Shown here: in pieces, positions 3,840 through 60,476 of the stretch
How positions within the stretch are numbered: the first letter of the stretch is position 1
How the letters are laid out: each line of letters begins with the position of its first letter
Virus record (IMG/VR): IMGVR_UViG_3300026521_000003
Span: 1-64,000 of that record
Length of the DNA stretch: 64,000 bases
Direction: 5' to 3' (one strand)
Notes under the pieces: model-generated
Seen by the model: the letters and a program-made list of their open reading frames with translations, nothing else
The model's database searches: none
What the model was told of the DNA's origin: nothing
Made by a program: the position numbers and the translations under genes

Positions 3840-4409
3840 ATGATTAAGATATTAAACATGAAAGAAGGAGAGATAATGTCAAAGCGAAAAAGTATAAAAA
3901 AGAAATCATTAATTAAGCCAAGACAATTAGCTCAAACTTATGTTGAAGATACTTTTGATTTTGAAAATATAGAAATTAAAAATGAAATAATCATAGAAAA
4001 TAATGTTAATGTCATTAATAAAAAAATAGTATCGGAAAAGGATCTATTAAATAATAAACAATTCGATTACAAACTAAAAGTTATTATTTCAAAAATTGAA
4101 TTTGAAAAATCCTTTGAGTTTCTTTTTGATTATGTTAAAAGTAGTCAATTATATAGAATATACTATATTGATGAAAATAAAGACGAATATGATATAATAT
4201 TAGATAAAATTAGCCTCCATTATATTAAAAGACTAGCTAAAATAAATTTAAATTATAATGATTATAAAAATATTTTATTCTATTTTGATAATCTGAAAAG
4301 ATTATATGGGCTATTTAAAAGAGCTTCTTTTAATGAAAAAGAGGAACTTAATAAAATACTAAAGAAGATTAATACTATGCATGACTATGTTGCTACATTA
4401 ATATTTTAG
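3840..4409 (+). CDS. Hypothetical protein (start probably 3876)
   Basis: Open ORF; AGGAG RBS before MSKRK. Confidence 0.6.
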   Translation: MIKILNMKEGEIMSKRKSIKKKSLIKPRQLAQTYVEDTFDFENIEIKNEIIIENNVNVINKKIVSEKDLLNNKQFDYKLKVIISKIEFEKSFEFLFDYVKSSQLYRIYYIDENKDEYDIILDKISLHYIKRLAKINLNYNDYKNILFYFDNLKRLYGLFKRASFNEKEELNKILKKINTMHDYVATLIF

Positions 4410-4448
4410 AATTTATAATTGTATAATTAGTATAAAATTGGGGGTTAT

Positions 4449-5252
4449 ATGAGCAAATTAGAAGAATTGATTAATGAATTAACAGATGACGAACTTGAAT
4501 ATTTACAAGAAACCGTATTTACTGATGATGGCACAATTATATCAAAAAAAGAGTTTGAGAAGATATTGCATTATGAAACAACTATGGAATCACAACAGGA
4601 TGCAGTACAATTTGCTCTTAAAATCAATCTTAATAGTGTATATGGTGTTCAAATTATGCCACATTTTAAATTTGCTGATGAATGGCAAGCATTAGGCGCT
4701 TCAACTACTTTAACAGGAAGAATTTTATCAAAATATGGCCTTATTGAAACCATAGAGCAATTTTTTAATCCTGAAAGAGAAAGTAGATTTGAATTCCCAT
4801 TACTTGATAATATTATTGTTGCTGCAGATGATGATGAGTTCTTTGAAAATCCAGAATCACAAAAATTAAGAAGTGCAGTAATTTCCGATACTGATAGTGT
4901 AACAAAAGATGCAACTATCGAAACGGATTTATTCGGTGTTATTACATTTGGTGAATTAGAGTTAAAAGCATCACATGTTAAAACTGAAAATAATAAAGAG
5001 TATTTTTATTTTGATTCTCCTTTACAAGTAACGAATTACATAGATAATAAAGTAGTATTCGATGAAGTTCAATATCTATATGCACATAGAGTTGAGAAAG
5101 AAATTTTTGAAATAGAATTAGAGGATGGTAGTTCAATCAAGGTGACTGAAGACCACTCTATAATGATTTTGGATAAAAATGGAGAACCAACTATTAAAAA
5201 GAAACCATCAGAATTATCAGTAGATGATGTATGTATGGTTTATACTAAATAA
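4449..5252 (+). CDS. polB: Family B DNA polymerase (gp43-like) internal fragment fused to split-intein N-half
   Basis: Motif B KINLNSVYG and TLTGR, then motif C cut at SDTD, followed by intein-like SVTKDATIET...IKVTEDHSIM (block B TxxH). Confidence 0.92.
   Translation: MSKLEELINELTDDELEYLQETVFTDDGTIISKKEFEKILHYETTMESQQDAVQFALKINLNSVYGVQIMPHFKFADEWQALGASTTLTGRILSKYGLIETIEQFFNPERESRFEFPLLDNIIVAADDDEFFENPESQKLRSAVISDTDSVTKDATIETDLFGVITFGELELKASHVKTENNKEYFYFDSPLQVTNYIDNKVVFDEVQYLYAHRVEKEIFEIELEDGSSIKVTEDHSIMILDKNGEPTIKKKPSELSVDDVCMVYTK
4896..5249 (+). other. Split intein N-fragment (118 aa, Ser1)
   Basis: Begins with Ser right after DTD. Block B TEDH present. The ORF ends with no block F/G. Confidence 0.9.
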
Positions 5253-5260
5253 GGTAAATT

Positions 5261-5977
5261 ATGTTTAAATGTATGTGTGGTAAAACGTATAAAACTGAAA
5301 AGGGACACCTAAAACATATATCATCTTGTAAATATAATAATATAGATTTAAAAAAAATTTATAGATTAGGATTGATTATACATGAAAATAATAAATTTTT
5401 ATTTCATGTACACTTTGGAAAAATTAATAAATTAAAAAAAGAAGGTAATTACACTAAAAGTGAGGCCGAAGAAATATTACTAAAAGAAAATATTTTTAAA
5501 TATCGAAAGTCGCTATGGGATATATTAGAAATATGGCAAGATGAATTATTGCCTAGTGAATATCGATCATTCACAGAATGGGCATTTAAAACATATAAAG
5601 ATATTACATTATTATCTTTAAAAAATACTCTTGGTAATAGAAAAGTAATTTATCGTTTTAATTTAGAAAATACAAACAAGATGATTAAAAAACGTATAGA
5701 TGATAGTTTACTATACATTCATAACAATAAGACATTTTATAACGATTTTGATTTTGTAGATGTTTTAATTACTGGAAATATTTCTATGTATTATGTATTA
5801 TTCAATGATTGGCTTGCATCAGAATGGTTTGGACGTTTAGAAATCGATTTACAGCATGAATTAGAATATTATGTGTCTATAGCTTCTAAAATTATTATTG
5901 ACCGTTTATCTCACGATGAATTTGATGAATTACAACAATTAGCAAATTCAGACACTCCAATAATTTATGAGATGTAA
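5261..5977 (+). CDS. Hypothetical protein with N-terminal zinc finger
   Basis: CMCGKTYKTEKGHLKHISSC. Confidence 0.6.
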   Translation: MFKCMCGKTYKTEKGHLKHISSCKYNNIDLKKIYRLGLIIHENNKFLFHVHFGKINKLKKEGNYTKSEAEEILLKENIFKYRKSLWDILEIWQDELLPSEYRSFTEWAFKTYKDITLLSLKNTLGNRKVIYRFNLENTNKMIKKRIDDSLLYIHNNKTFYNDFDFVDVLITGNISMYYVLFNDWLASEWFGRLEIDLQHELEYYVSIASKIIIDRLSHDEFDELQQLANSDTPIIYEM

Positions 5978-10238: not shown

Positions 10239-11600
10239 ATGAAAATAATAAACAAAGAATTATTTGAAAAACCTAGTTGTAAATTTAAATTTCTAGCAAA
10301 AGAAGGCTTTAATATACCTAATTTTTATGAAGTTGAATCAACTGATGAAATTCTTGCTATATACAAAGAATACACAGAAGGTAAACGTGAGAACCTATCT
10401 TATGATATAGATGGTTTAGTTGAAGAAGTTAATGATTATGAAATTCAAGAAAAATTAGGATATGAACCAAACGGTTTAAACCCGAAATTTGCTACAGCTA
10501 TAAAATTTGATAGTATATCTAAAAGTACGGAATTAGTAGATATAAGATGGACTGTTGGTATGACTGGAAAAATTATCCCAACTGCTATTTTAAAACCTGT
10601 AGACATTATGGGAGTAACCATTACCAAAGCATCAATGCATAACTTTGATTATTTAATGGATTATATAAACAAATATGATATTGGTATTGGAAGTAAAATG
10701 ATAGTTGCAAGGAAAGGCGATGTTATACCACAAATAATAGGTGTTGCTGACAATAAAAAAATATCGGATATACAAATACCTGATTTATGCCCAATATGTC
10801 ATGAAAAAGTACATAATTTTTCAGTTGATTTAGTTTGTGAAAATCCATTTTGTGAAGCTAAGACTAAGGGAATCTTTACTAATTTCTTCGGAACATTAGA
10901 TATAAAAGGATTAAGTGAAAAATTTATAGATAAAGCTATTGAACAATTCAATATTAAAACTATCGATGATCTTATGAAACTTACGATTGATGATATAGAA
11001 TCTCTTGAAGGCTTTGCTAGAAAATCAGCAGAAAAAGCATACAACGCCATTCATAGTGTTAAAGAAGTGAGTCCAGAACAATTTATGGCATTATTAAATA
11101 TACCAAACCAAGGTGTTCGAGTATTTGAGAATTTATTATCTGAAACACCAATAGAAAAATTACTAGATCCAGATTTTAAAGCTGAAGATTTATTAGATAC
11201 TAAAGGAATTGCAGAAAAAACAGCTCAAGCTATATATGACGGCATTCAAATGAATTTAGAAAGAATACGTGAAAATGCTGAACATTTTACCATAATAACA
11301 AAGAAAAATAAAATTCAGCATTCAAGTAAAATTACAGGAAAGTCTTTCTGTATAACAGGTACTTTGAATAAAGGGAAAAGGAAAGATTATGAAAATTTAA
11401 TTAAATCTATGGGTGGATTAGTTTCTAGTGTTAATAAATCATTAAATTATTTAGTTACAAATGACCCTGAAACGACTTCTAGTAAAATGACTAAGGTATT
11501 AAAACTTAATGCAGAATGGCATAATAATGGTGAAGATAGATCAATACAAATAATCAATGAAGATGATTTAATAAATTTAATAGGAGATAGTAATGAGTAA
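10239..11600 (+). CDS. ligA: NAD-dependent DNA ligase, C-terminal fragment (end of adenylation domain, OB, Zn finger, HhH, BRCT)
   Basis: YDIDGLV, AIKF, VGMTGKIIP, ASMHN, GDVIPQI, CPIC...C...C, HhH motifs, BRCT FCITG. No KxDG motif I. Confidence 0.85.
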   Translation: MKIINKELFEKPSCKFKFLAKEGFNIPNFYEVESTDEILAIYKEYTEGKRENLSYDIDGLVEEVNDYEIQEKLGYEPNGLNPKFATAIKFDSISKSTELVDIRWTVGMTGKIIPTAILKPVDIMGVTITKASMHNFDYLMDYINKYDIGIGSKMIVARKGDVIPQIIGVADNKKISDIQIPDLCPICHEKVHNFSVDLVCENPFCEAKTKGIFTNFFGTLDIKGLSEKFIDKAIEQFNIKTIDDLMKLTIDDIESLEGFARKSAEKAYNAIHSVKEVSPEQFMALLNIPNQGVRVFENLLSETPIEKLLDPDFKAEDLLDTKGIAEKTAQAIYDGIQMNLERIRENAEHFTIITKKNKIQHSSKITGKSFCITGTLNKGKRKDYENLIKSMGGLVSSVNKSLNYLVTNDPETTSSKMTKVLKLNAEWHNNGEDRSIQIINEDDLINLIGDSNE

Positions 11601-12105: not shown

Positions 12106-13074
12106 ATGAGTAATCTAAAAGACCAAATATGGGTTGCGAAATATGCACCATCAAACTTGAATGAAACTATCATGACTGATGAAATTAAGGAAAAAATGGA
12201 AGATTTTGTTAGAACAAAAAATATTCCTAATCTTCTTTTTGCTGGACCTGCCGGTACAGGTAAAACAACAACAGGTAAAGTATTATTGGATTCATTGGGA
12301 GTTGATGATGGAGATATTATGTTTTTAAATGCTTCTGATGTAAATAGTGTAGATGCTGTAAGAAATATGATTAAACCCTTTGCTATGAGCATGAGTATAA
12401 ATCAGGAACTACCAATTAGATTTATTTTTCTTGATGAAGCAGACCATTTATCACCACAGGCACAGGCTGCTCTAAGAAATCTTATTGAATCTAGTTATAA
12501 TTCCGCTAGATTTATTTTAACGGCAAATTATCCTAAAAAAATTATTCCTGCTTTACATAGTAGATTACAGGGATTTACTTTGGAGAAACCAGCTTTAGAG
12601 CCTATATTAGAAAGAGTTATCACAATATTAGAAAATGAAGAAGTCGAAATAGAAAATGAAGATGATTTAGTAAGTTTAATTAAAAATAATAGTACAGATA
12701 TTAGAAAATTAATTCAATTATTACAACAAAATACGATTGATACAGAAGAAGGTAAAATTTTACGCATAGTTATTAAAGAAAGTGGAGGATCAAAACTTTT
12801 TGACGATTATAGTAAATTATTCTGCAAAGGTGATGCTAAAGCATTACGAAATTTAGTTTTTTCTAAATTTACTGATAGTGATTGTGCTGAATTTTGGGAT
12901 TTAATGGTAGATGATATTATTAAATCACCTGAAAAATATGAGGAAGTTGGAGCTGGCCTTGATAATATTATTTATAATTTAAATGAAGGTCAAAAAACAC
13001 ATGAAATTGTAGCAAATAAACAGTTAAATGTTCTGGGATTTACTCTTTTAGCTTTAATTGATGAGGAAGAGTAA
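12106..13074 (+). CDS. Clamp loader AAA+ subunit (gp44/RFC-like)
   Basis: WVAKYAP, Walker A GPAGTGKTT, LNASD, Walker B LDEAD, SRL. Confidence 0.92.
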   Translation: MSNLKDQIWVAKYAPSNLNETIMTDEIKEKMEDFVRTKNIPNLLFAGPAGTGKTTTGKVLLDSLGVDDGDIMFLNASDVNSVDAVRNMIKPFAMSMSINQELPIRFIFLDEADHLSPQAQAALRNLIESSYNSARFILTANYPKKIIPALHSRLQGFTLEKPALEPILERVITILENEEVEIENEDDLVSLIKNNSTDIRKLIQLLQQNTIDTEEGKILRIVIKESGGSKLFDDYSKLFCKGDAKALRNLVFSKFTDSDCAEFWDLMVDDIIKSPEKYEEVGAGLDNIIYNLNEGQKTHEIVANKQLNVLGFTLLALIDEEE

Positions 13075-13076
13075 TA

Positions 13077-13694
13077 ATGGTGTATATAAGTATAGATTTA
13101 GAAACAACTGGTTTGAATCCTGAAACATGTCAAATTTTAGAATTTGGAGCTGTCTTGGAAGACACTAATAATATCAAACCTTTAGATGAATTACCAACAT
13201 ATCATGCATATATCAAACATCCTGGCGGAAATATTTCTGGAAATATATATGCTTTAGATCTTAACAAGGAAATTATCAGTAACCTTAAAAATGAGAAAGA
13301 CTTAAAAGATAAATATAATTTTATAAAAGTTGAGGATTTAGCTGATGATTTTCTTGCATGGTGTAAAATTCAAGGATTGGAAATCAAAGAAAGTACGCAT
13401 AAAGGTGGAACAAATTTTTCATGCACAATTAATGTTGCAGGGAAAAATTTCTCCGGATTTGATCGTAAGTTTTTAGAAAATGTACCAGATTTTACTAAGA
13501 AAATACGTATGCGACAAAGAGTAATTGATCCAGCCATTTTATTTATTGATTGGGAAAATGATACTTCAGCCCCACATTTAGAATTATGCAAACAAAGGGC
13601 AAATATATCTGGAGTTGTTACACATTTAGCAGTCGATGATGCAATGGATGTAATTAAATTATTACGAACTCAATATGCTAATAAACCAAAGTAA
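13077..13694 (+). CDS. DEDDh 3'-5' exonuclease (DnaQ-like)
   Basis: IDLETTG, GKNFSGFD, HLAVDDA. Confidence 0.85.
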   Translation: MVYISIDLETTGLNPETCQILEFGAVLEDTNNIKPLDELPTYHAYIKHPGGNISGNIYALDLNKEIISNLKNEKDLKDKYNFIKVEDLADDFLAWCKIQGLEIKESTHKGGTNFSCTINVAGKNFSGFDRKFLENVPDFTKKIRMRQRVIDPAILFIDWENDTSAPHLELCKQRANISGVVTHLAVDDAMDVIKLLRTQYANKPK

Positions 13695-21594: not shown

Positions 21595-24123
21595 ATGAAT
21601 AACCTTTCTAAAAAGGCAATCGAATATTTAAAGCAATTAAATGACTTAGACATTGCATGGTTTGAAGATAAAGATAGAAAATTTGTTATGCTATTTGAAA
21701 AGCCCTCACAAGTAAAAGCTATAAAGCCCGTTATGGGATCTACAAAAGATACAAAACATATTAAAAATATTTCGCTTGCTGGTCATACTATGAGACTAAA
21801 AAATTTTGATGAATATAATCCTAAGCTAAAGGATAAATCATGGTATAAAATGGTTAAAGATAAAGATCTACCATTTATACCTGATAACTATGAGTTAGTT
21901 GTTAAAGAAAAATCAACAGGCAAATTTAAAACTGATTATCAGGAAATGGTTTTAAATGCTAAGCGAGCATTTGATGAAGCTGATTGGATTGTACTAGGTG
22001 TTGATCCTGATAATGAAGGTTGTGCATTAGGTATGGAAGTTATTATGGAATGTAATGCTGAAGATAAAGTAATCGGCATGGTTAATATGTCCAAACTTGA
22101 TTTTCATTCATTAAAAGAGGAAGTAAAAACTTTAGACAAAATACCTTTTTGGAATATGGCACAAAGTGGTTTTGCTAGAGGAGAATTTGACTGGGCTTTT
22201 GGCTTAAATAATACTATTTTAGCGTCTGTTTTATTGGGTGGTGGTCAAACATATCATGTTGGTGGTGTGAAATCACCTGTTATAAGAATGGTAGTAGATA
22301 GACTAAATCATATTAAGAATTTTAAACCTGTTAAATATTGGAGATTCGGGGGTTTAGCAAAACATAAAGAATCTGGTGTGGAATTTAATTATATTATAAA
22401 AATTAAACAAGATGATACAGATATTATCAAAACTCAAAAAAATATAGATAAACTTGAAAAGGAATTAGAGTCTATCGATAAAGATGATGAAGTTAATAAA
22501 GATAAAGTTTCATCATTATATAATGAATTAGGCAAATTAAGATGGAAATTAAATGAATTAGTTAAAGAATTTGAGAGTTCAGAAAGAGATATTTATTCAA
22601 GTAAAATGAGAAAAAAAGTAGAAAATGCCATAAAAATAGGTATGAATTTTAAAGTAAGTAATTTCACACAAAAAAATAATCTTACCCAAAATCCACCATT
22701 AGCATATTCACTAACTGACTTACAATCAGAGGCAGGTAATTTACATAATTTTACACCTGCAAAAACATTAGCTACGGCGCAAAAGTTGTATGAAGGACAA
22801 TGGCAATCTTATCCTAGAACAGATAATAGATATTATGCTAGTGGCGAAATGTCAAATATTAAAAAGATAATACCAAATTTATTAAATCTATCATCATTTA
22901 AAAATGTTAATATTCCTACTCCATTTAAAGTAAAAACTGGAGTATTTAATAGTGCAAAAGTATCAGCTCATACAGGTTTAGCACCTACAGCAAAAGAAAT
23001 GACTGACAAATCATTATCCGGAGAACAAAAAATTATTTTTGATATGGTTGCAACAAGATACCTTATTCAATTTATGGATAAATTTGAATACTATAAAGTT
23101 GAAATGGATGCCGATATTGATGATGAAATATATTTGACTACTTTTCAAAATATTCAAACTAAAAAAGGTTGGAGAGAGTTATATAATCCAGCTAATATGT
23201 ACGGTTTTACTTACGTAGAACAACAAACCTTACCAACAATGAAAAAAGGTGATAATATTGAAATCATTACGATAGAAAAAGAATCATTAGAAACTAAACC
23301 CAAACCTATGTTTAGTGAATTTAGCTTATTAAAAGGAATGGAAAATATTTCACGTATATATCCAGAATTAGAAGGATTAGAAAAAGGCATTGGTACTCCT
23401 GCTACAAGAGCAAGTATTTTAGATTCTTTATTTAAATCAAAATACTTAATCAAAAAAGGTAGAGTTATTGATGCTAGTGAAAAGGCAATAACACTTACAA
23501 ATTTATTACCTGATGAAATGACTAATCCTAAATTAAGAGCCGATATGGAAGCAAAACTTAATCAAATTGTTGATGGTAGTTTGACAAAAAAAGAATATGA
23601 ATTAGAATTTAAGAAAATGGTAGAAGAACAGGCTAAAAAATTATATGAGATAGGTGAAAAAAATAATATTGAAATAATTGATAAAGCTACTTTACCACCT
23701 AGTGAAGCACAATTAAAATTTGCAAAAACTATGGAGAAAGAATTAAATATAAAAATCCCTAAAGAAGCCTTAGAACTTAAAGATGAATTAACCAAATGGC
23801 TTAAAAAACATGAGAAAAAAATGCCTAATTTACTTTCTGATAAACAAGTAGCATTTTTAACTGAATATGGTCAAGACGATGAAGAAATCGTAGCGATTTT
23901 AGATGCAAATGCTAAAAGAGAAATGACAAAAGAACAAAAATTTAAAGCCTCTAAATGGTTAGGAACTTATATGCGAACTAGTGAATATCAGAAAAAGAGA
24001 GCTGCAAAAGCGGCAGCAACAAGAAAACGTAATAGAGAAGCTAAAATGAAAGCTATGGGTATTGAAACACCAACAGTTTCTATAAAACGTCCACGTAAAA
24101 AGAAAGAGAAAAAAGAAAAATAA
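21595..24123 (+). CDS. Type IA DNA topoisomerase (TopA/TopB-like)
   Basis: EKPS, GH, DPDNEG, SYPRTD (catalytic Tyr), AHTGLAPT, GIGTPATRA. Confidence 0.92.
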   Translation: MNNLSKKAIEYLKQLNDLDIAWFEDKDRKFVMLFEKPSQVKAIKPVMGSTKDTKHIKNISLAGHTMRLKNFDEYNPKLKDKSWYKMVKDKDLPFIPDNYELVVKEKSTGKFKTDYQEMVLNAKRAFDEADWIVLGVDPDNEGCALGMEVIMECNAEDKVIGMVNMSKLDFHSLKEEVKTLDKIPFWNMAQSGFARGEFDWAFGLNNTILASVLLGGGQTYHVGGVKSPVIRMVVDRLNHIKNFKPVKYWRFGGLAKHKESGVEFNYIIKIKQDDTDIIKTQKNIDKLEKELESIDKDDEVNKDKVSSLYNELGKLRWKLNELVKEFESSERDIYSSKMRKKVENAIKIGMNFKVSNFTQKNNLTQNPPLAYSLTDLQSEAGNLHNFTPAKTLATAQKLYEGQWQSYPRTDNRYYASGEMSNIKKIIPNLLNLSSFKNVNIPTPFKVKTGVFNSAKVSAHTGLAPTAKEMTDKSLSGEQKIIFDMVATRYLIQFMDKFEYYKVEMDADIDDEIYLTTFQNIQTKKGWRELYNPANMYGFTYVEQQTLPTMKKGDNIEIITIEKESLETKPKPMFSEFSLLKGMENISRIYPELEGLEKGIGTPATRASILDSLFKSKYLIKKGRVIDASEKAITLTNLLPDEMTNPKLRADMEAKLNQIVDGSLTKKEYELEFKKMVEEQAKKLYEIGEKNNIEIIDKATLPPSEAQLKFAKTMEKELNIKIPKEALELKDELTKWLKKHEKKMPNLLSDKQVAFLTEYGQDDEEIVAILDANAKREMTKEQKFKASKWLGTYMRTSEYQKKRAAKAAATRKRNREAKMKAMGIETPTVSIKRPRKKKEKKEK

Positions 24124-24474: not shown

Positions 24475-25428
24475 ATGGGTTATGGGTATTATTCTCGACG
24501 TTATTCATACGAAAGTCCTTCTCCCATAGAAATGTCAGATAATGACATAAATACATTAATCAATACTCTCAAAGAACAAATAGAAAATAATAAATTAAAA
24601 GATATAAGATCAACATTATCCAAATTGAAATTATCCACAAATGAAAAATATAAAGATTATGTTGGATTTAATGCTGTAATTTTAGCATACGTATATGCAT
24701 TAAAAATAGGCAGTAGTAAAACAATAAGTAGTTTGGAAAAAACTATTTTTAAAAAAAATTTTACAGTTGACGGGTTAAATATTTTATCACTTTCTAAGAT
24801 TCTAAAAAATGATTTTAAACTATTTATGGATCATTATCTAATAGATAAAAATACAATATACACAATAGATGATAATGAAACTATTACCTTTTTATTCTCA
24901 AATTATCCTACTGAAGCAGAAGTAATTATTAAAAATGGTAAAATTAGTAAATTTATAAAGGGCGAGGATAGATTAAATGTAATACTATCAATAATTAAGT
25001 ATTCTGAATTATTTGAGACTATTATAATCGGTTTAACAACTTTATATGGTACCGATTATGTAGATAAATTTTCAATCAAATATGACACTTTAAAAAAAAT
25101 CCACGATGAAATAATCTTAAAATCAAAACCTCTATTAAAGTCTCTCTTAAATGATTTTTATTATATTATTTATAAAGAATTTATAACTGCAGATATTTTA
25201 ATTTATGATTTAGAACATAAGTTGTTATTAGAAAATACACAAAAAAAATATATTGAATCTATATTAGATATAAGCGAAAAAAAACTTTTTGAATTATTAT
25301 ATCTGATTAAAAATCATGAATTACGTACTAATTTTATAGCTAATTCTGAAAAAGTATTATCATTAATTGTTAAAAATGGAGATCCCACACTTATACCTAA
25401 TGAAATAAAGGACATATTTCTTTTTTAA
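24475..25428 (+). CDS. Hypothetical protein
   Basis: 317-aa open ORF. Confidence 0.6.
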   Translation: MGYGYYSRRYSYESPSPIEMSDNDINTLINTLKEQIENNKLKDIRSTLSKLKLSTNEKYKDYVGFNAVILAYVYALKIGSSKTISSLEKTIFKKNFTVDGLNILSLSKILKNDFKLFMDHYLIDKNTIYTIDDNETITFLFSNYPTEAEVIIKNGKISKFIKGEDRLNVILSIIKYSELFETIIIGLTTLYGTDYVDKFSIKYDTLKKIHDEIILKSKPLLKSLLNDFYYIIYKEFITADILIYDLEHKLLLENTQKKYIESILDISEKKLFELLYLIKNHELRTNFIANSEKVLSLIVKNGDPTLIPNEIKDIFLF

Positions 25429-25478
25429 AAAAATTGTAAAATATTATACAAATAACATAGTATAATAAGGTATTTACA

Positions 25479-25601
25479 ATGACACTATCTCACAAAAAAA
25501 TAAAATCTATTAAAAAAGTTAAATATTATGACAAAGTATATGATATAACTATGAAGTCCAACCCACATACATTTTTTGCTAATAATATTTTAGTACATAA
25601 C
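25479..25601 (+). other. Split intein C-fragment (41 aa, basic), Ser+1 at 25602
   Basis: Block F VYDI and block G LVHN followed by Ser. Confidence 0.92.
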
Positions 25602-26633
25602 AGTTGCTATTTTAGAATAATGGAGGCAGAAAATTTGGAGGAAGCTCAAAAAATTGGTGCCGATGTTGTAAAAGCATGTGATGAAGGTAGTATTCCAATG
25701 TTGGTTAAAGATATTTTTAATGGTGATGATGTCATGAGATCCGATTTTGAAGCTATTGCCCGTTCAACATTATCATATGGTAAAAAGAAACAATATGCAT
25801 TTCTAAAAGGTTGGGAAGATGGTGAAGTACTTCCAAAGCCAAAATTAGGTATTACCGGTCTATCTATTAAAAGATCTGATTCACCCAAACAACTATCTAT
25901 GGAAATGAAACCGTTCTTTACTGAAATTATGAAAGGTTTAAAACATGAGCAAATCAAAGAAGCTATGGATAAAATTGAGTCGGATTATGATGATCTAAGC
26001 TTATATGATTTATCTGCAAAACGTTCAGCGAATAATTTAGGTAAATATTTAAAAGCATTCAATTATGAAATTGAATATAAATCTAGACCTTATAATATAG
26101 AAAAAATTGATGAATTTTTAAAAGAAGAGTACCCTGATATAAAAATTAAAATAAATGATAAAATATATTTTGATTTTATGAGAGAAGGTAGAGGTCGTTA
26201 TTCATTAGAAGATGGTGAATTAATAAAAGATGTTAATGGCGAAATTTATATTGAAGCAAAGGTAAAAATGGTTGTACCATTTCATATAAAGGCGTCTATT
26301 TTATATAACTATCTATTAGATGAATATAATTTATCATCCGAGTTTAATCAAATATTAAACGGTGAAAAAATTAAACTTTTTTATATTAAACCTACAAAAA
26401 TAAATATAAAATATACAAATAGTGATGGTGAAGTATTTGATATGATACAAGAATTTGATTGTATTGCATTCCCTTCTAGTTCTAAACACATACCATCATT
26501 TATTAATGATTTTACCCCAGATAAAAAGAGAATGCTAGAAACTTATTTCTTTGGTAAAATGGAAACTATTTTTGATGTTATTGGATTTAGCAAAGAAAAA
26601 CTTGAAAATATAGCTATGGATTCACTATTCTAA
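25479..26633 (+). CDS. polB: Split-intein C-half fused to family B DNA polymerase C-terminal part (palm/thumb)
   Basis: VYDITM...TFFANNILVHN|SCYF, then KKKQYA, GLSIKRSDSP, PFHIKASILYN, GEKIK. Confidence 0.92.
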   Translation: MTLSHKKIKSIKKVKYYDKVYDITMKSNPHTFFANNILVHNSCYFRIMEAENLEEAQKIGADVVKACDEGSIPMLVKDIFNGDDVMRSDFEAIARSTLSYGKKKQYAFLKGWEDGEVLPKPKLGITGLSIKRSDSPKQLSMEMKPFFTEIMKGLKHEQIKEAMDKIESDYDDLSLYDLSAKRSANNLGKYLKAFNYEIEYKSRPYNIEKIDEFLKEEYPDIKIKINDKIYFDFMREGRGRYSLEDGELIKDVNGEIYIEAKVKMVVPFHIKASILYNYLLDEYNLSSEFNQILNGEKIKLFYIKPTKINIKYTNSDGEVFDMIQEFDCIAFPSSSKHIPSFINDFTPDKKRMLETYFFGKMETIFDVIGFSKEKLENIAMDSLF

Positions 26634-26641
26634 ACGTATAA

Positions 26642-27028
26642 TTAAAAACTATATACGTTTAGACTATCTATAAATTCATTCCATTCTTCGATACTATTAT
26701 TACTAAATTGTTCAGCATTTTCTTTATCAAATGTAAATCCGATATTAGGAACTTTCTCTAAAATACGCTTATAAAAATTTATATCTTCAAACGTATTTTT
26801 AATTGAAATTTTTATATTTGTTTTTTTTAATTTATTTAATGTTGTTATTATTGTAGACATACGTTCACCACGTTTAAAACCTGTTACTTTTTCCGATAAA
26901 TCACCTACTATAAAATATTTTATACCATGCTCATTAGCTGTTTCTAATTCTTGCATTAATTTTAAATTAATACTCTCAATTTCTTCATTAAATTTATATA
27001 AACCTAGTACAGTATTTAATTCATTCAT
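26642..27028 (-). CDS. Hypothetical protein
   Basis: GAGGA RBS. Confidence 0.55.
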   Translation of the reverse strand: MNELNTVLGLYKFNEEIESINLKLMQELETANEHGIKYFIVGDLSEKVTGFKRGERMSTIITTLNKLKKTNIKISIKNTFEDINFYKRILEKVPNIGFTFDKENAEQFSNNSIEEWNEFIDSLNVYSF

Positions 27029-27157: not shown

Positions 27158-28117
27158 CTATTTATGGAGCCAAGATTTAATAATTTCTTTCTGTTTTTGA
27201 CTAAGATCAACATAAAAAATTTCTATTTCTACTATAAAATCCCCGATTTTATCTTTATTAATTGACTTAATACCTTTTTCTTTAAAAACTAATTTCTTTT
27301 TATTTTTTATATCATTGGTGTCAATAGTAATTTGTTCATCAACACCATCAATAATAATTTCATCTTCTATTAAAATATCTAACACATTAAGTTTTAAAGT
27401 CTTATATATATCTAAACCATCTCTCCTAAATTCACTATCATTATTAATATTAAGTTCAATATATAAATCACCTTTTATATTATTAATTTTATTAGCTTTA
27501 CCTCTCATAACTAAACGGGTATGATTGTCGACTCCTGATGGTACAACACATTTTAATTTTATAATCTCTTCTTTGAATCCTAGACCATCACAGCTACTAC
27601 ATGAATATATTTTTGTATATCCTATACCTTTACAGTTTGAACATAATATATTTGTAGTAACAAATCCACTCTTACTTTGAATAGTGCCATTACCGTCACA
27701 ATTTGGACAGGGCTTAAAGTTACCACCATACCCGTTACATTCATTACATTCACTCTTTTGCTTAAATTCAAATGGTATTTCGACACCAATGATTGATTCA
27801 TAGAAATTAATGTGCATTTGAATTACTTCATCTTTTTTAAAAGTTTTTTTTAATTTCTTTTTGATTTCTTTCTTTGGGTATCTAAAAATTGTACGTGTAT
27901 TTTTATTATAACTATAATAAAGTTTATCATAATCAGAACGTTTTTGTGAATTTGAAAGAATATCATAAGCCGCATTAATCTTTTTAAAGATAGTTTCAGC
28001 CTCTAAGTCTTTATTTAAATCTGGGTGATATTTTTTTGCTAATTTTCTATACTTATATTTTATATCCTCTAATAAAGCATTAGGAGATATTTCCAAAATC
28101 GCATAATAATCAATCAT
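27158..28117 (-). CDS. dnaJ: DnaJ co-chaperone
   Basis: DYYAIL, J-domain KYHPD, four CxxCxGxG repeats, C-terminal domain. Start MIDYY follows GGAG. Confidence 0.92.
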   Translation of the reverse strand: MIDYYAILEISPNALLEDIKYKYRKLAKKYHPDLNKDLEAETIFKKINAAYDILSNSQKRSDYDKLYYSYNKNTRTIFRYPKKEIKKKLKKTFKKDEVIQMHINFYESIIGVEIPFEFKQKSECNECNGYGGNFKPCPNCDGNGTIQSKSGFVTTNILCSNCKGIGYTKIYSCSSCDGLGFKEEIIKLKCVVPSGVDNHTRLVMRGKANKINNIKGDLYIELNINNDSEFRRDGLDIYKTLKLNVLDILIEDEIIIDGVDEQITIDTNDIKNKKKLVFKEKGIKSINKDKIGDFIVEIEIFYVDLSQKQKEIIKSWLHK

Positions 28118-28170
28118 AGTTACTCCATTTTTAAGATATTTATTTAAGGAAATTAACATAAGTATTAATT

Positions 28171-57515: not shown

Positions 57516-59237
57516 TTAATATTTTTTTAAAATACGTCTTCCACTATCCGTATAAATTAAAAACCCATTCATTATCATATTTTCTTTAATTGTTAAATTT
57601 TCATCATACAAATCTATATATCCCATTATATTAGTATGATCTAAAGTATTATGGGAAATAAATATTTTTTCTTTATTATAATATAATGATTCTGATATTG
57701 ATCCTTCAAAACTAAAGTCAATCTTAAAAAATAAATCCAAATATAAATTAAATCTTCGGTCAATTGATATTATTATAGGCTTATCGGTCGATATTAAAAT
57801 ATCTATAAATGGATTAGTGTTAAAATTTATTTCTGGACATATTATAAAATGTTTAATTTCTATATTATTTTTATGATTAGAAATACCCATTACAGCTAAG
57901 AGTTCACCATTAAAAAATGCACCATACATTTTTATAAATGATAGGTTGATATTATACATATGTTTATTTAAAAAATCAAAACCTATGGAAGTATCAATTA
58001 TTTTGACTTCAAGCTCATTAATATCTAGGGTTTTTATTTTATATTTTAATTTATGGAGTATAATCTGTTTACAATAATCTTCATGATATTCCCATTCATA
58101 TTCATAAAATTGTATCAATGTTATATCTAAATTATCAGCGATTAGACTACTATCAATATAAGATGTATCCCTCGAAGTTGATGGTGACAAAATCTCTATA
58201 AATATATTTGATTTTAAGATTTCTATTTTATCCATATCTACTATCTTAAAGATATACCCTATTGAACTTAAAAAATCTTGGATTTTATTTAAAATATGTT
58301 TTCTATTATTTAATCTAGGATTACATTGAAAACAAACGGGTAAATTATTACTATCAATTAGACTTGTAATTATATTATTACATCTCTTACATTTAAATTT
58401 ATATTTATATTTGTTATCATATACCTGCAAATCATCAATACAAGTAACAAAAATATTATCTTTAAATTTTTCAAAAATTTTATTATTAAGGGTACTATCA
58501 ATTTTTGATAAGGATATAGGATTTTTTTGAGCAGAATAACTATCATATTTTGAAATAATTGTATTTTTACGTTTTTCTAAAATAGATTTATTCTTTATAG
58601 GAAATATAGTTCCGAATTTTTTTAAGTTTGTATTATATGCTTTTTTTCTAATATAATCTAATGATAAAGGGTGTTTAACACCATATTTAATCAAATTGGT
58701 AGTTATCGTTTTATTTCTAATTTCTTGAGATTGTTGTGCATATTCCACCCCATATTTCTCAATCATTGTCTTTTTTATTTTTTCTTTTGTACTATCTAAT
58801 TTTGCAATAGAATCAACACCATATTTTTCTTTAACCGTCTTTTTTATTTTTTCTTTTGTACTATCTAATTTTGCAATAGAATCAACACCATATTTTTCTT
58901 TAACCGTCTTTTTTAATTTCTTTTTTTGTTTTTCATTTTGTAAAGGGTGTTCTGTTCCATAATTTTTAAGAAATGTTATTTTTTGATTATGTTCTTTTGA
59001 ACATCCTAAATTAAATATATTAGTACGTTCATTAAATGAAGCATAATTTGAACAATTTTTAAATTGACATTTTGGAGGAGTATCTAGATCCCTTATCAAT
59101 AAATACCATTGGGCTTTTATAGATAAAGTTGGGTATCTCTCATTAAGATACCCAATAAGTTCTTTTGAAAAGTTTTTAAAATAAATATTTTTTTTAGTTT
59201 TATAATATTCAATTTCTTCTTTTAATTTAGTTTCCAT
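57516..59237 (-). CDS. Hef-like putative homing endonuclease with KYG repeats
   Basis: KKT..EKYGV repeats, CKRC...CFQC, C-terminal FL.K...YGAF...LLAVM...IDRRF...G.F...Y..G, typical of the Hef-like family in Campylobacter phages. Confidence 0.6.
   Translation of the reverse strand: METKLKEEIEYYKTKKNIYFKNFSKELIGYLNERYPTLSIKAQWYLLIRDLDTPPKCQFKNCSNYASFNERTNIFNLGCSKEHNQKITFLKNYGTEHPLQNEKQKKKLKKTVKEKYGVDSIAKLDSTKEKIKKTVKEKYGVDSIAKLDSTKEKIKKTMIEKYGVEYAQQSQEIRNKTITTNLIKYGVKHPLSLDYIRKKAYNTNLKKFGTIFPIKNKSILEKRKNTIISKYDSYSAQKNPISLSKIDSTLNNKIFEKFKDNIFVTCIDDLQVYDNKYKYKFKCKRCNNIITSLIDSNNLPVCFQCNPRLNNRKHILNKIQDFLSSIGYIFKIVDMDKIEILKSNIFIEILSPSTSRDTSYIDSSLIADNLDITLIQFYEYEWEYHEDYCKQIILHKLKYKIKTLDINELEVKIIDTSIGFDFLNKHMYNINLSFIKMYGAFFNGELLAVMGISNHKNNIEIKHFIICPEINFNTNPFIDILISTDKPIIISIDRRFNLYLDLFFKIDFSFEGSISESLYYNKEKIFISHNTLDHTNIMGYIDLYDENLTIKENMIMNGFLIYTDSGRRILKKY
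58768..58915. repeat. Perfect 69-bp tandem repeat (about 2.1 copies; 23 aa)
   Basis: KKTVKEKYGVDSIAKLDSTKEKI twice, identical at DNA level. Confidence 0.9.
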
Positions 59238-59243
59238 AACATA

Positions 59244-60476
59244 TTATTTTGTAGCTAGCCATTCTTTTCTAATTGATGCATTATCATCAAAAAATATTTG
59301 CATTAATTCATCTAAATGTCCTTGATCAGTAATATTAAAGGCATATTCATCCAAATTTGAAAATACATATTCCCAATCCGGCTTTTGCATAGATCCTAAT
59401 CCTTTAAAGTAATCAATTTTCCACGAATCATCAACCGCACCAGATTCTTTAGCTTCATCAAATTCATGTCTATTTGAATAATATAATACTTTTTTACCTT
59501 TTTTTGCAGCAATCATAGGAAATACAATTCTATTAATAAATGGGTTTTCATGATCCCAAAATAGTTCTGGGAAATATTCATGGAATAAATTAACAACAAG
59601 ATTATTAATAGCACTTCCATCTGGATCAGCATCAGTTGCTATATAAATTTTTGAATATTTCAATTTCGTATCAAAAGCAGGACGTAACCATTTATGAAAT
59701 CTAACTAATTTAGCAGTAGAATCAGCTTTTTTAATCTCTATACTTTGTGTTGTTTTTGGCATTTTTTTAAGTAACATAGACACTTTATGCCATTTTTTAT
59801 CAATATATACTTCATCGATGTCATTGCAAATTAATGTCGTTCTACCTATTTTAACTTCGTATTTAACACCATTTTTTCTAAATCCTCTAAATTCCCATTT
59901 TCTTCTAAAATGAAAATAATCTGGGGCTGAAAGATCAGAAATTGTAGCGTCACTTGTTTCTATTTTTTGAATATATCCACGATATAGTGTTTCATTATTT
60001 ACCAACTCACCAATACTAACCCATTTTTTATTTAAGTGGAATTTATCTTCTGAGCTAACAATTACTGTTTTGATTATAGGTTCACCTTCTTTATCAACTT
60101 CAAAAATACTTTCAAAAGTTACCTCATATATATTCACATTATCACTAATCACCCAATCACCCATTTGTTCATTAAACTCAAGATTTATTGCTGTAATTAT
60201 ATCAGCTACTTCATCATTATTCATTGCATCTATTGGTGCTTTACCATAAACATTTAAAACTTTACCTTTTAATGGCATCCCTGCTTGTGTCTCTGGATCC
60301 CTAATCTCAGTAAATGAAGCTATTGCAGAATTATGTGTTAATAATCCATTTTCAAGAATAAATGTTTCATTATCTTCTACTTGTATATCATTCATATTAA
60401 TGACTTTATTAGTACTATAAACACTATTAATTTCTACCATATCAAATTCATCAATATTTATTTCATTCAATTGCAT
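59244..60476 (-). CDS. Split-intein C-half fused to type II topoisomerase TOPRIM fragment (gp39/gp60, GyrB C-terminal-like)
   Basis: NDIQVEDNETFILENGLLTHN|SAIA (the SA of EGDSA), PLKGKVLNV, IATDADPDG, YFKGLGS. Confidence 0.9.
   Translation of the reverse strand: MQLNEINIDEFDMVEINSVYSTNKVINMNDIQVEDNETFILENGLLTHNSAIASFTEIRDPETQAGMPLKGKVLNVYGKAPIDAMNNDEVADIITAINLEFNEQMGDWVISDNVNIYEVTFESIFEVDKEGEPIIKTVIVSSEDKFHLNKKWVSIGELVNNETLYRGYIQKIETSDATISDLSAPDYFHFRRKWEFRGFRKNGVKYEVKIGRTTLICNDIDEVYIDKKWHKVSMLLKKMPKTTQSIEIKKADSTAKLVRFHKWLRPAFDTKLKYSKIYIATDADPDGSAINNLVVNLFHEYFPELFWDHENPFINRIVFPMIAAKKGKKVLYYSNRHEFDEAKESGAVDDSWKIDYFKGLGSMQKPDWEYVFSNLDEYAFNITDQGHLDELMQIFFDDNASIRKEWLATK
60330..60476 (-). other. 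Split intein C-fragment (49 aa, acidic), Ser+1 at 60329-60327
   Basis: Block F DIQV...TF and block G LTHN followed by Ser. Confidence 0.88.

Follow-up and report, generated by a model that had tools for sequence, protein, structure and literature searches.

The ORF located at nucleotides 4449-5252 (+) of the DNA analyzed here codes for a short piece of a family-B DNA polymerase followed by one half of an intein. It raises the question of how an enzyme is built around such a piece: where the remainder of the polymerase is encoded, by what process the pieces are joined, and whether they are still maintained as functional genes. The 64-kb window, i.e. the whole stretch of DNA analyzed, is the first 64 kb of a 289,880-bp IMG/VR record (G000), and both are numbered from the same nucleotide. 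The record is linear, 87% complete according to CheckV, and has a G+C content of about 27%. Its T4-like capsid, portal, and baseplate genes (phrog_138, phrog_213, and phrog_10646) identify the source, as judged from gene content, as a T4-related jumbo phage. Two related IMG/VR virus records, G001 and G002, are the only relatives of G000 that were found in IMG/VR, and a search of the GTDB genomes returned no relative. G001 runs 15.7 kb past the left end of G000. The right end of G000 (289347-289880) is inside a region of EEPK peptide repeats and the left end of G001 (1-691) is inside TESTD peptide repeats; the assemblies probably break at repeat-rich giant genes, which would account for the approximately 13% that is missing from G000.

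The N piece and its start in the fingers domain

ORF 4449-5252 specifies a 267-amino acids protein composed of a 149-amino acids family-B DNA polymerase N-extein (4449-4895, +) and a 118-amino acids split intein N half (4896-5249, +), followed by the stop codon at 5250-5252. The N-extein includes fingers helix 2 with motif B (KINLNSVYG, amino acids 58-66), a palm segment, and motif C up to the sequence ISDTD, with which it ends. Residues K58, N62, S63, Y65, and G66 of motif B are invariant in an alignment of gp43B-type proteins. The intein half starts with Ser1 (SVTKD...) and includes block B as TEDHSIM, and residues 150-267 match the Pfam families Intein_splicing (PF14890) and Hint (PF01079). 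Matches of the N-extein to PHROG families cover positions 16-89 of phrog_1918 and 498-553 of phrog_262. Positions 26-127 of the N-extein family profile align to residues 528-630 of the RB69 polymerase and 528-605 of the T4 polymerase and, by extrapolation from this profile alignment, residue 1 of the N-extein corresponds approximately to residue 503 of RB69 gp43. In the RB69 enzyme we take the fingers to span residues 469-572, with K560 in motif B and D621 and D623 in motif C, and the alignment would consequently place the start of the N-extein at the tip of the fingers, ahead of motif B. This agrees with the first-pass annotation, which had described a 149-amino acids N-extein beginning in the fingers just before motif B.

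The same annotation had reported that no C half of an intein precedes the N-extein, and several features of the locus bear this out. There is an in-frame stop codon six codons 5' of the ATG, and a GGGGG ribosome-binding site precedes the ATG with a spacing of 5 nt. No C-intein and no HN[CST] motif were found at the start of the ORF, and the intein match spans amino acids 196-264 only. In addition, the start aligns with those of the gp43B-type proteins P0075, P0081, P0133, and P0082, all of them without an N-terminal C-intein. The same architecture, with a total length of 264-280 amino acids, is found in about 50 protein clusters from metagenomic relatives (59-100% identity), a recurrence that rules out a chance or assembly effect behind the ORF. 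ORF 4449-5252 would then be an independently translated gene that encodes the first 149 residues of a gp43B-type C-terminal subunit fused to the N half of a class-1 split intein.

The intergenic leader of the N piece (4410-4448, +) consists of TAGTATAA followed by the ribosome-binding site. A box similar to TAGTATAA is found ahead of the C piece described below (approximately 25458-25465), and 29% of the 45 TAGTATAA sites precede an ORF start vs 12% of random positions; this is a weak hint that TAGTATAA may be a promoter common to both pieces. Directly after the N piece there is a conserved zinc-finger ORF (5261-5977, +; 238 amino acids), which is part of the genetic context and not of the polymerase. 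Its homologues follow the N piece in G002 and in contig L024 (39% identity, E 3e-55), and contig L013 has a 239-amino acids ORF in the same place. ORF 5261-5977 showed no family match, and none to an endonuclease family, although it occupies the place where the "fractured genes" discussed below carry a homing endonuclease.

In some relatives, P0055, P0056, P0062, and P0070 (196-209 amino acids) and P0076-P0080 (66-78 amino acids), motif B of the N piece is the site of a further cut. One part ends in ...KINLNSV plus a few junk residues and the next one begins with ...SYGVQIM or MPHF, which suggests the presence of an intron or a further split.

The C piece

A genome-wide intein scan located a C-terminal intein block at nucleotides 25479-25601 (+). 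This 41-amino acids split intein C half, which ends in NNILVHN, is the beginning of an ORF (25479-26633) that continues as a 343-amino acids C-extein (25602-26630, +; stop codon at 26631-26633). The first residue of the C-extein, Ser+1 (SCYF...), completes motif C as DTDS, and the extein includes the motifs GKKKQYA (KKRY-type) and TGLSIKRSD, the thumb, and a ...DSLF tail that we take to resemble the clamp-binding tails of T4-type polymerases. It matches phrog_262 (E 2.9e-35) and phrog_1918 (E 1.6e-24) and maps to residues 672-791 and 795-887 of the RB69 polymerase, the latter being the thumb; within its family the motifs for catalysis and primer binding are invariant, including the GKKKQYA and TGLSIKRxDSP columns. 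The C piece was found in about 50 related metagenomic protein clusters with the same length and ends, and a search of the phage collection gave no match to the C-extein. In all these searches the N-extein and the C-extein were used separately. About 25 genes lie in the 21 kb that separate the N and C pieces.

Other ORFs in the vicinity of the C piece, or with similar ends, were recorded. ORF 21595-24123 (+), which codes for an 842-amino acids protein related to phrog_13226 ("unknown function"), includes Toprim (DPDNEG) and YPRTD motifs typical of type IA topoisomerases. The gene at 27158-28159 (−), convergent to the C piece, encodes a DnaJ-type chaperone with a J domain and a CxxCxGxG zinc finger. 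More than 10 ORFs, such as those at 24475-25428 (+) of the window and at 236756-256664, 271115-272443, and 282561-283583 of G000, end in ...(D/E)IF(I/V/L)F, a sequence that resembles the ...DSLF of the C-extein and the clamp-binding tails of T4-type proteins. The ORFs of a second, smaller set (191-194 kb and 238-240 kb of G000) end in ...PEWLI.

The split intein and trans-splicing

The hallmarks of a class-1 split intein are present in the two pieces, i.e. Ser150, block B TEDHSIM, and ...VHN followed by S, and Pfam Intein_splicing matches both halves, which lie in separate genes. When residues 135-267 of the N piece were co-folded with the first 75 residues of the C piece, the model had an ipSAE of 0.83, vs 0.00 for the best of three controls, which is to be read as likeness and not as proof of binding because intein complexes have already been solved. 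Of 78 solved complexes 51 attained this ipSAE mark, as did 2 of 108 mismatched pairs. At least 90% of the contacts were common to the runs, the partner pLDDT was at least 68, and the interface was on residues 1-43 of the C piece. A relative that has no intein, P0075 (488 amino acids), has the two exteins fused, with the sequence ...ISDTDSCYF... unbroken and the same start as the N-extein.

Homology and modelling thus point to a process in which the product of the N piece pairs with that of ORF 25479-26633 through the intein halves, and trans-splicing would join ...ISDTD to SCYF..., rebuilding motif C. The predicted spliced product is a B subunit of about 492 amino acids including fingers helix 2, motifs B and C, the KKRY-type motif, the thumb, and a clamp-binding-type tail. 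In our judgement the generation of the B subunit by trans-splicing is well supported and very probably correct. Joining of the pieces at the RNA level was considered and rejected: an Rfam scan of the 64-kb window found no family, hence no group I intron.

Selection on the two pieces

Two pieces located 21 kb apart that do not flank a homing endonuclease gene, with the front half of the polymerase absent (see below), could also be remnants, now decaying, of a polymerase gene that mobile elements had fragmented. The first-pass annotation had noted that an intact polB elsewhere would make them relics. No intact polB was found in the 289,880-bp record, and the substitution patterns are not those of relics. 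When compared to the G001 copies (97-98% identical), the dN/dS values were 0.038 for the N-extein and 0.039 for the C-extein at a dS of 0.33-0.44; values for the exteins against more distant relatives were 0.10-0.16. The intein halves compared to G001 had values of 0.11 (N half) and 0 (C half), the C-intein being 100% identical to its G001 copy (dN = 0). Furthermore, about 50 protein clusters per piece preserve the reading frame, the start, and the catalytic residues of the intein. Strong purifying selection acts on the two exteins, and the notion that they are relics is hardly credible.

Relationship to known divided polymerases

The family phrog_1918, which includes 382 positions and is described as "DNA polymerase", starts where the N-extein starts and is the B-type subunit family, while natural front halves match phrog_2062 (502 positions), the A-subunit family. 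The N-extein also shares its start with the natural B subunits P0081 and P0133. From these alignments the break of the N piece in the fingers appears to be homologous to the known gp43A/gp43B break.

The gp43A/gp43B polymerases of the Aeromonas phages 25 and 44RR, to the extent that they are described in the accounts of Petrov et al. (2006, 2010) given in PMC2988022 and PMC2677866, have the same break at the fingers tip, with a B subunit whose first residues lie immediately ahead of motif B. For Aeromonas phage 25, gp43A and gp43B are stated to co-purify and to be active (PMC2988022, citing Petrov et al. 2010). In the same accounts the A gene of these phages is located just upstream, past an untranslated spacer or a homing endonuclease gene, whereas no A gene was found in the 290 kb of G000, and the G000 B subunit, unlike the B subunit of phages 25 and 44RR as described there, has a split intein that divides it at motif C.

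In three other T4-like lineages, a B gene with the same start is preceded by a gp43A-type gene. Lineage L010 has an A gene of 597 amino acids (PF03104 and PF00136), an inserted gene, and a B gene of 421 amino acids; L069 has A and B genes of 534 and 404 amino acids, respectively, 17 nt apart. In L025 (ENA ERZ4214608 NODE_47890) the order is the end of gp43A (motif A ... FWYSERK...), a GIY-YIG endonuclease gene, a gene for the N-terminal part of B fused to an N-intein, the product of which is the 263-amino acids protein P0082, and an endonuclease-like gene. L025 is like G000 in that the N-terminal part of B is fused to the N half of a split intein, and it represents the three-piece layout proposed in the first-pass annotation minus the last piece, as the contig ends before the C piece. 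It differs from G000 in belonging to another lineage (34% identity in the N-extein), in the clustering of the pieces, and in having an ordinary A half.

The closest cultured match to the N-extein is the polymerase of the Pseudomonas jumbo phage PA5oct (MK797984, EST35_0311/0312/0313), in which a homologous split intein interrupts motif C at the same DTD|S position. As in G000, its N-intein starts with SV... and contains TEDHSIM, and its C-intein ends in ILVHN|SCYF. Unlike that of G000, the PA5oct N piece is an 803-amino acids protein with the exonuclease domain, motif A, and both fingers helices, so that the enzyme consists of two pieces; its halves flank a Hef-like homing endonuclease gene, whereas those of G000 are 21 kb apart. 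The "fractured genes" are phage-like metagenomic loci with split inteins in which an endonuclease gene is flanked by the two halves, both on the same strand (Dassa et al. 2009, PMC2677866). G000 is like them in having a replication enzyme cut by a naturally split intein, with its parts in separate genes and predicted trans-splicing. Its layout is not theirs, as the halves are 21 kb apart and the ORF that follows the N piece matches no endonuclease family. The Nanoarchaeum equitans PolB is also trans-spliced, and according to the account of Choi et al. (2006) given in PMC2677866 its two pieces make a whole PolB, while those of G000 would make the rear half only.

Search for the front half

The spliced B subunit would include neither motif A nor the exonuclease domain, and it would need a separately encoded, non-covalently bound A subunit, because polymerase chemistry, the conserved active-site motifs, and the gp43A/gp43B precedent call for a partner with motif A. 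That the enzyme would be built from three pieces is a reasonable inference. The simplest reading is that the partner is an ordinary, separately encoded gp43A, a view to which we give moderate confidence.

Motif A (DxxSLYPS) is absent from both pieces and has no credible match in the 289,880-bp record. The 3'-5' exonuclease domain (DEDDy, Exo I-III) was not found in G000, G001, or G002 using PF03104, the PHROG polymerase families, and custom HMMs, nor was a front half matching PF03104, PF00136, phrog_262, phrog_2062, phrog_403, or phrog_3011 detected in these three records. The absence of the exonuclease domain and motif A that the first-pass annotation had noted in the window thus extends to the whole record. 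The gene with the Exo motifs and DxxSLYPS for which it had proposed to search the remainder of the genome was not found in G000, 87% complete as it is. It had also proposed an enzyme made by one non-covalent split plus one trans-splicing event; of this, the trans-splicing and a fingers break homologous to that of gp43A/gp43B hold up, and the third piece was not found.

Since the genome profile search had missed a phrog_405 match and DEDD exonucleases that hmmscan detected in G000, we relied on unfiltered HMMER searches of all six frames that included every G000 reading frame of at least 40 amino acids. No front half was found in G000 with those of PA5oct, L005, L010, and L069 as queries. A full-length PolB model made of four sequences scored the two known pieces at 36.9 and 53.5 bits, and neither this model nor one of seven sequences found anything else above 8 bits in the six frames of G000. 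As a control, the reference pieces of PA5oct, and likewise those of L010, were concatenated. The front halves of other T4-like polymerases have scores about 1.5 times those of the rear halves, and therefore a front half of ordinary divergence would have shown in G000.

PHROG and family scans of about 70 ORFs identified no front half, and no polymerase besides a 216-amino acids DnaE-like ORF. The search was extended to about 70 kb upstream of the N piece in an 81% identical relative, walking along a 113-kb JGI contig and past the end of a 346,973-bp contig, on a path that stops short of the right end of G000. No PolB front half was found in this stretch, which is probably what G000 lacks, because nothing in G000 corresponds to it. 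No front half was found in about 20 additional contexts of the C piece either. A word search with a natural A subunit gave mostly ordinary T4-like polymerases, and among the 120 matches listed none was on a contig of this lineage. With an ordinary gp43A as the partner, the missing gene would be in unassembled sequence or would be too diverged to be recognized.

A few candidates were discarded. The motif-A-like sequence GVDVASMYPSSTSSYN (239355-239810 of G000), the sole look-alike, has no PolB match in Pfam, PHROGs, or Atlas, and its ORF is a paralogue of that at 238118-238639, the two being members of a small family whose proteins end in ...PEWLI; the neighboring ORF 237666-238172, which has a motif-B-like string, was rejected together with it. 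The ORFs that gave the top weak matches to the front-half model were the DnaJ-type chaperone gene at 27158-28159 (−) and ORF 26642-27028 (−), which has no signal. The ORF directly upstream of the N piece (3840-4409, +; 189 amino acids) occupies the place of the gp43A gene in other lineages and is conserved in relatives, and it was considered as a reduced A subunit; it has no motif A and no support from Pfam, PHROGs, or Atlas.

Alternative partners and roles

No search for an A half succeeded, whether in the 290 kb of G000, in approximately 70 kb from a relative, or in about 20 other contexts, while the rear half was easily detected. These results would also be expected if no homologous A half existed and the spliced B subunit worked with a non-homologous or unrecognizably diverged partner encoded in the assembled genome, for instance a small palm piece paired with a free-standing DnaQ-type exonuclease. 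Two such exonucleases are present. One (13077-13694, +), which matches phrog_192 "DNA polymerase exonuclease subunit" (E 1.2e-12), is located right after the clamp-loader gene (12106-13074), the position at which T4 carries genes 62, regA, and 43. The other is at 285202-286080 (+) of G000. Both are of the DEDDh type and not of the DEDDy type found in PolB. Many ORFs of 340-725 amino acids without a family could also encode a partner of this kind. Against it, no candidate has motif A, as the GVDVASMYPSSTSSYN look-alike lacks any polymerase signal and the ORF upstream of the N piece is unsupported, the three comparable lineages all have an ordinary gp43A as the partner, and the record is only 87% complete. 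We consider such a partner unlikely, with an appreciable chance of being real. In its most definite form, a T4-like jumbo lineage of about 290-350 kb would replicate with a trans-spliced PolB rear half and no homologous front half, the first catalytic Asp and proofreading being supplied by a partner unlike the known PolB N-terminal halves, perhaps working with the free-standing DnaQ-type exonuclease encoded beside the clamp-loader gene; this has a small chance of being right.

The lack of a detected A half could also mean that the half-polymerase is kept for a role other than synthesis, e.g. as a clamp-binding or regulatory subunit, while another polymerase, from the phage or the host, replicates the genome. 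The ...DSLF tail of the C-extein, which we assume to be like the clamp-binding tails of T4-type proteins, would suit this role, and so would the DnaE-like ORF at 123161-123808 (+) of G000. This 216-amino acids ORF matches the fingers domain PF17657 with 33.9 bits (cut-off 22) and phrog_11778 (E 1.2e-19), and retains DLDLD, HPAG, KIDIL, RPG, and KPHA-type motifs in about one quarter of the usual length. Such a fragment is unlikely to be a replicase, however, and the approximately 70 scanned ORFs included no full-size polymerase of another family. Moreover, there is little or no variation across the family in motif B, in the DTD of motif C, or in the KKRY-type and thumb motifs, a degree of conservation that fits a working active site. 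We regard a non-synthesis role as distinctly improbable. As a whole, the explanation that a trans-spliced gp43B-type subunit works with a separate A subunit absent from the 290-kb record is the one we favor, as fairly likely.

Other enzymes encoded by scattered genes

The reading of a separately encoded gp43A is supported by the arrangement of other enzymes, because the same genome keeps their halves far apart. The halves of an NAD-dependent DNA ligase are 176 kb apart and have no intein: the N half (185859-186659 of G000, +) includes the KxDG motif and covers positions 4-212 of PF01653, and the C half (10239-11600, +) starts at position 175 of the same family. The halves of topoisomerase II, 117 kb apart, carry a split intein. 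The N part (176790-178418 of G000, +) ends in ...SEGD followed by an N-intein with Cys1, and the C part (59244-60476, −) begins with a C-intein ending in THN, followed by SAIASF. From these sequences topoisomerase II is predicted to be trans-spliced as well, with a junction that would rebuild the Toprim sequence EGDSA. The gene after the C part (57516-59237, −; phrog_3339) encodes a homing endonuclease.

Other intein-bearing pieces are located at 279367-280167 (+), 196330-197670 (−), 225495-226097 (+), and 226440-227642 (+) of G000. They include two parts of the terminase large subunit, each starting with a nearly whole intein that ends in HN|C, the C part of a helicase behind a C-intein (THN|SAAG), and a 401-amino acids ORF with a Hint-like C-terminal domain.

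Significance

The gp43 break in the fingers and the presence of split inteins in phage replication genes are each already known, and as far as could be found there is no description in the literature of the two combined in one polymerase. The pieces of this polymerase are scattered over at least 21 kb instead of being grouped at an endonuclease gene. Because search after search returned no A half, an unrecognizable partner or a non-synthesis role retains some real probability, and a strongly conserved half-polymerase without a detectable front half in about 360 kb of sequence of the lineage is consistent with an assembly gap or with a new kind of polymerase partner. The genome is also a source of new orthogonal split inteins with Ser at both junctions (Ser1 and Ser+1). 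Since topoisomerase II, ligase, helicase, and terminase are split in this genome too, it is a natural test bed for the rebuilding of essential enzymes from scattered parts.
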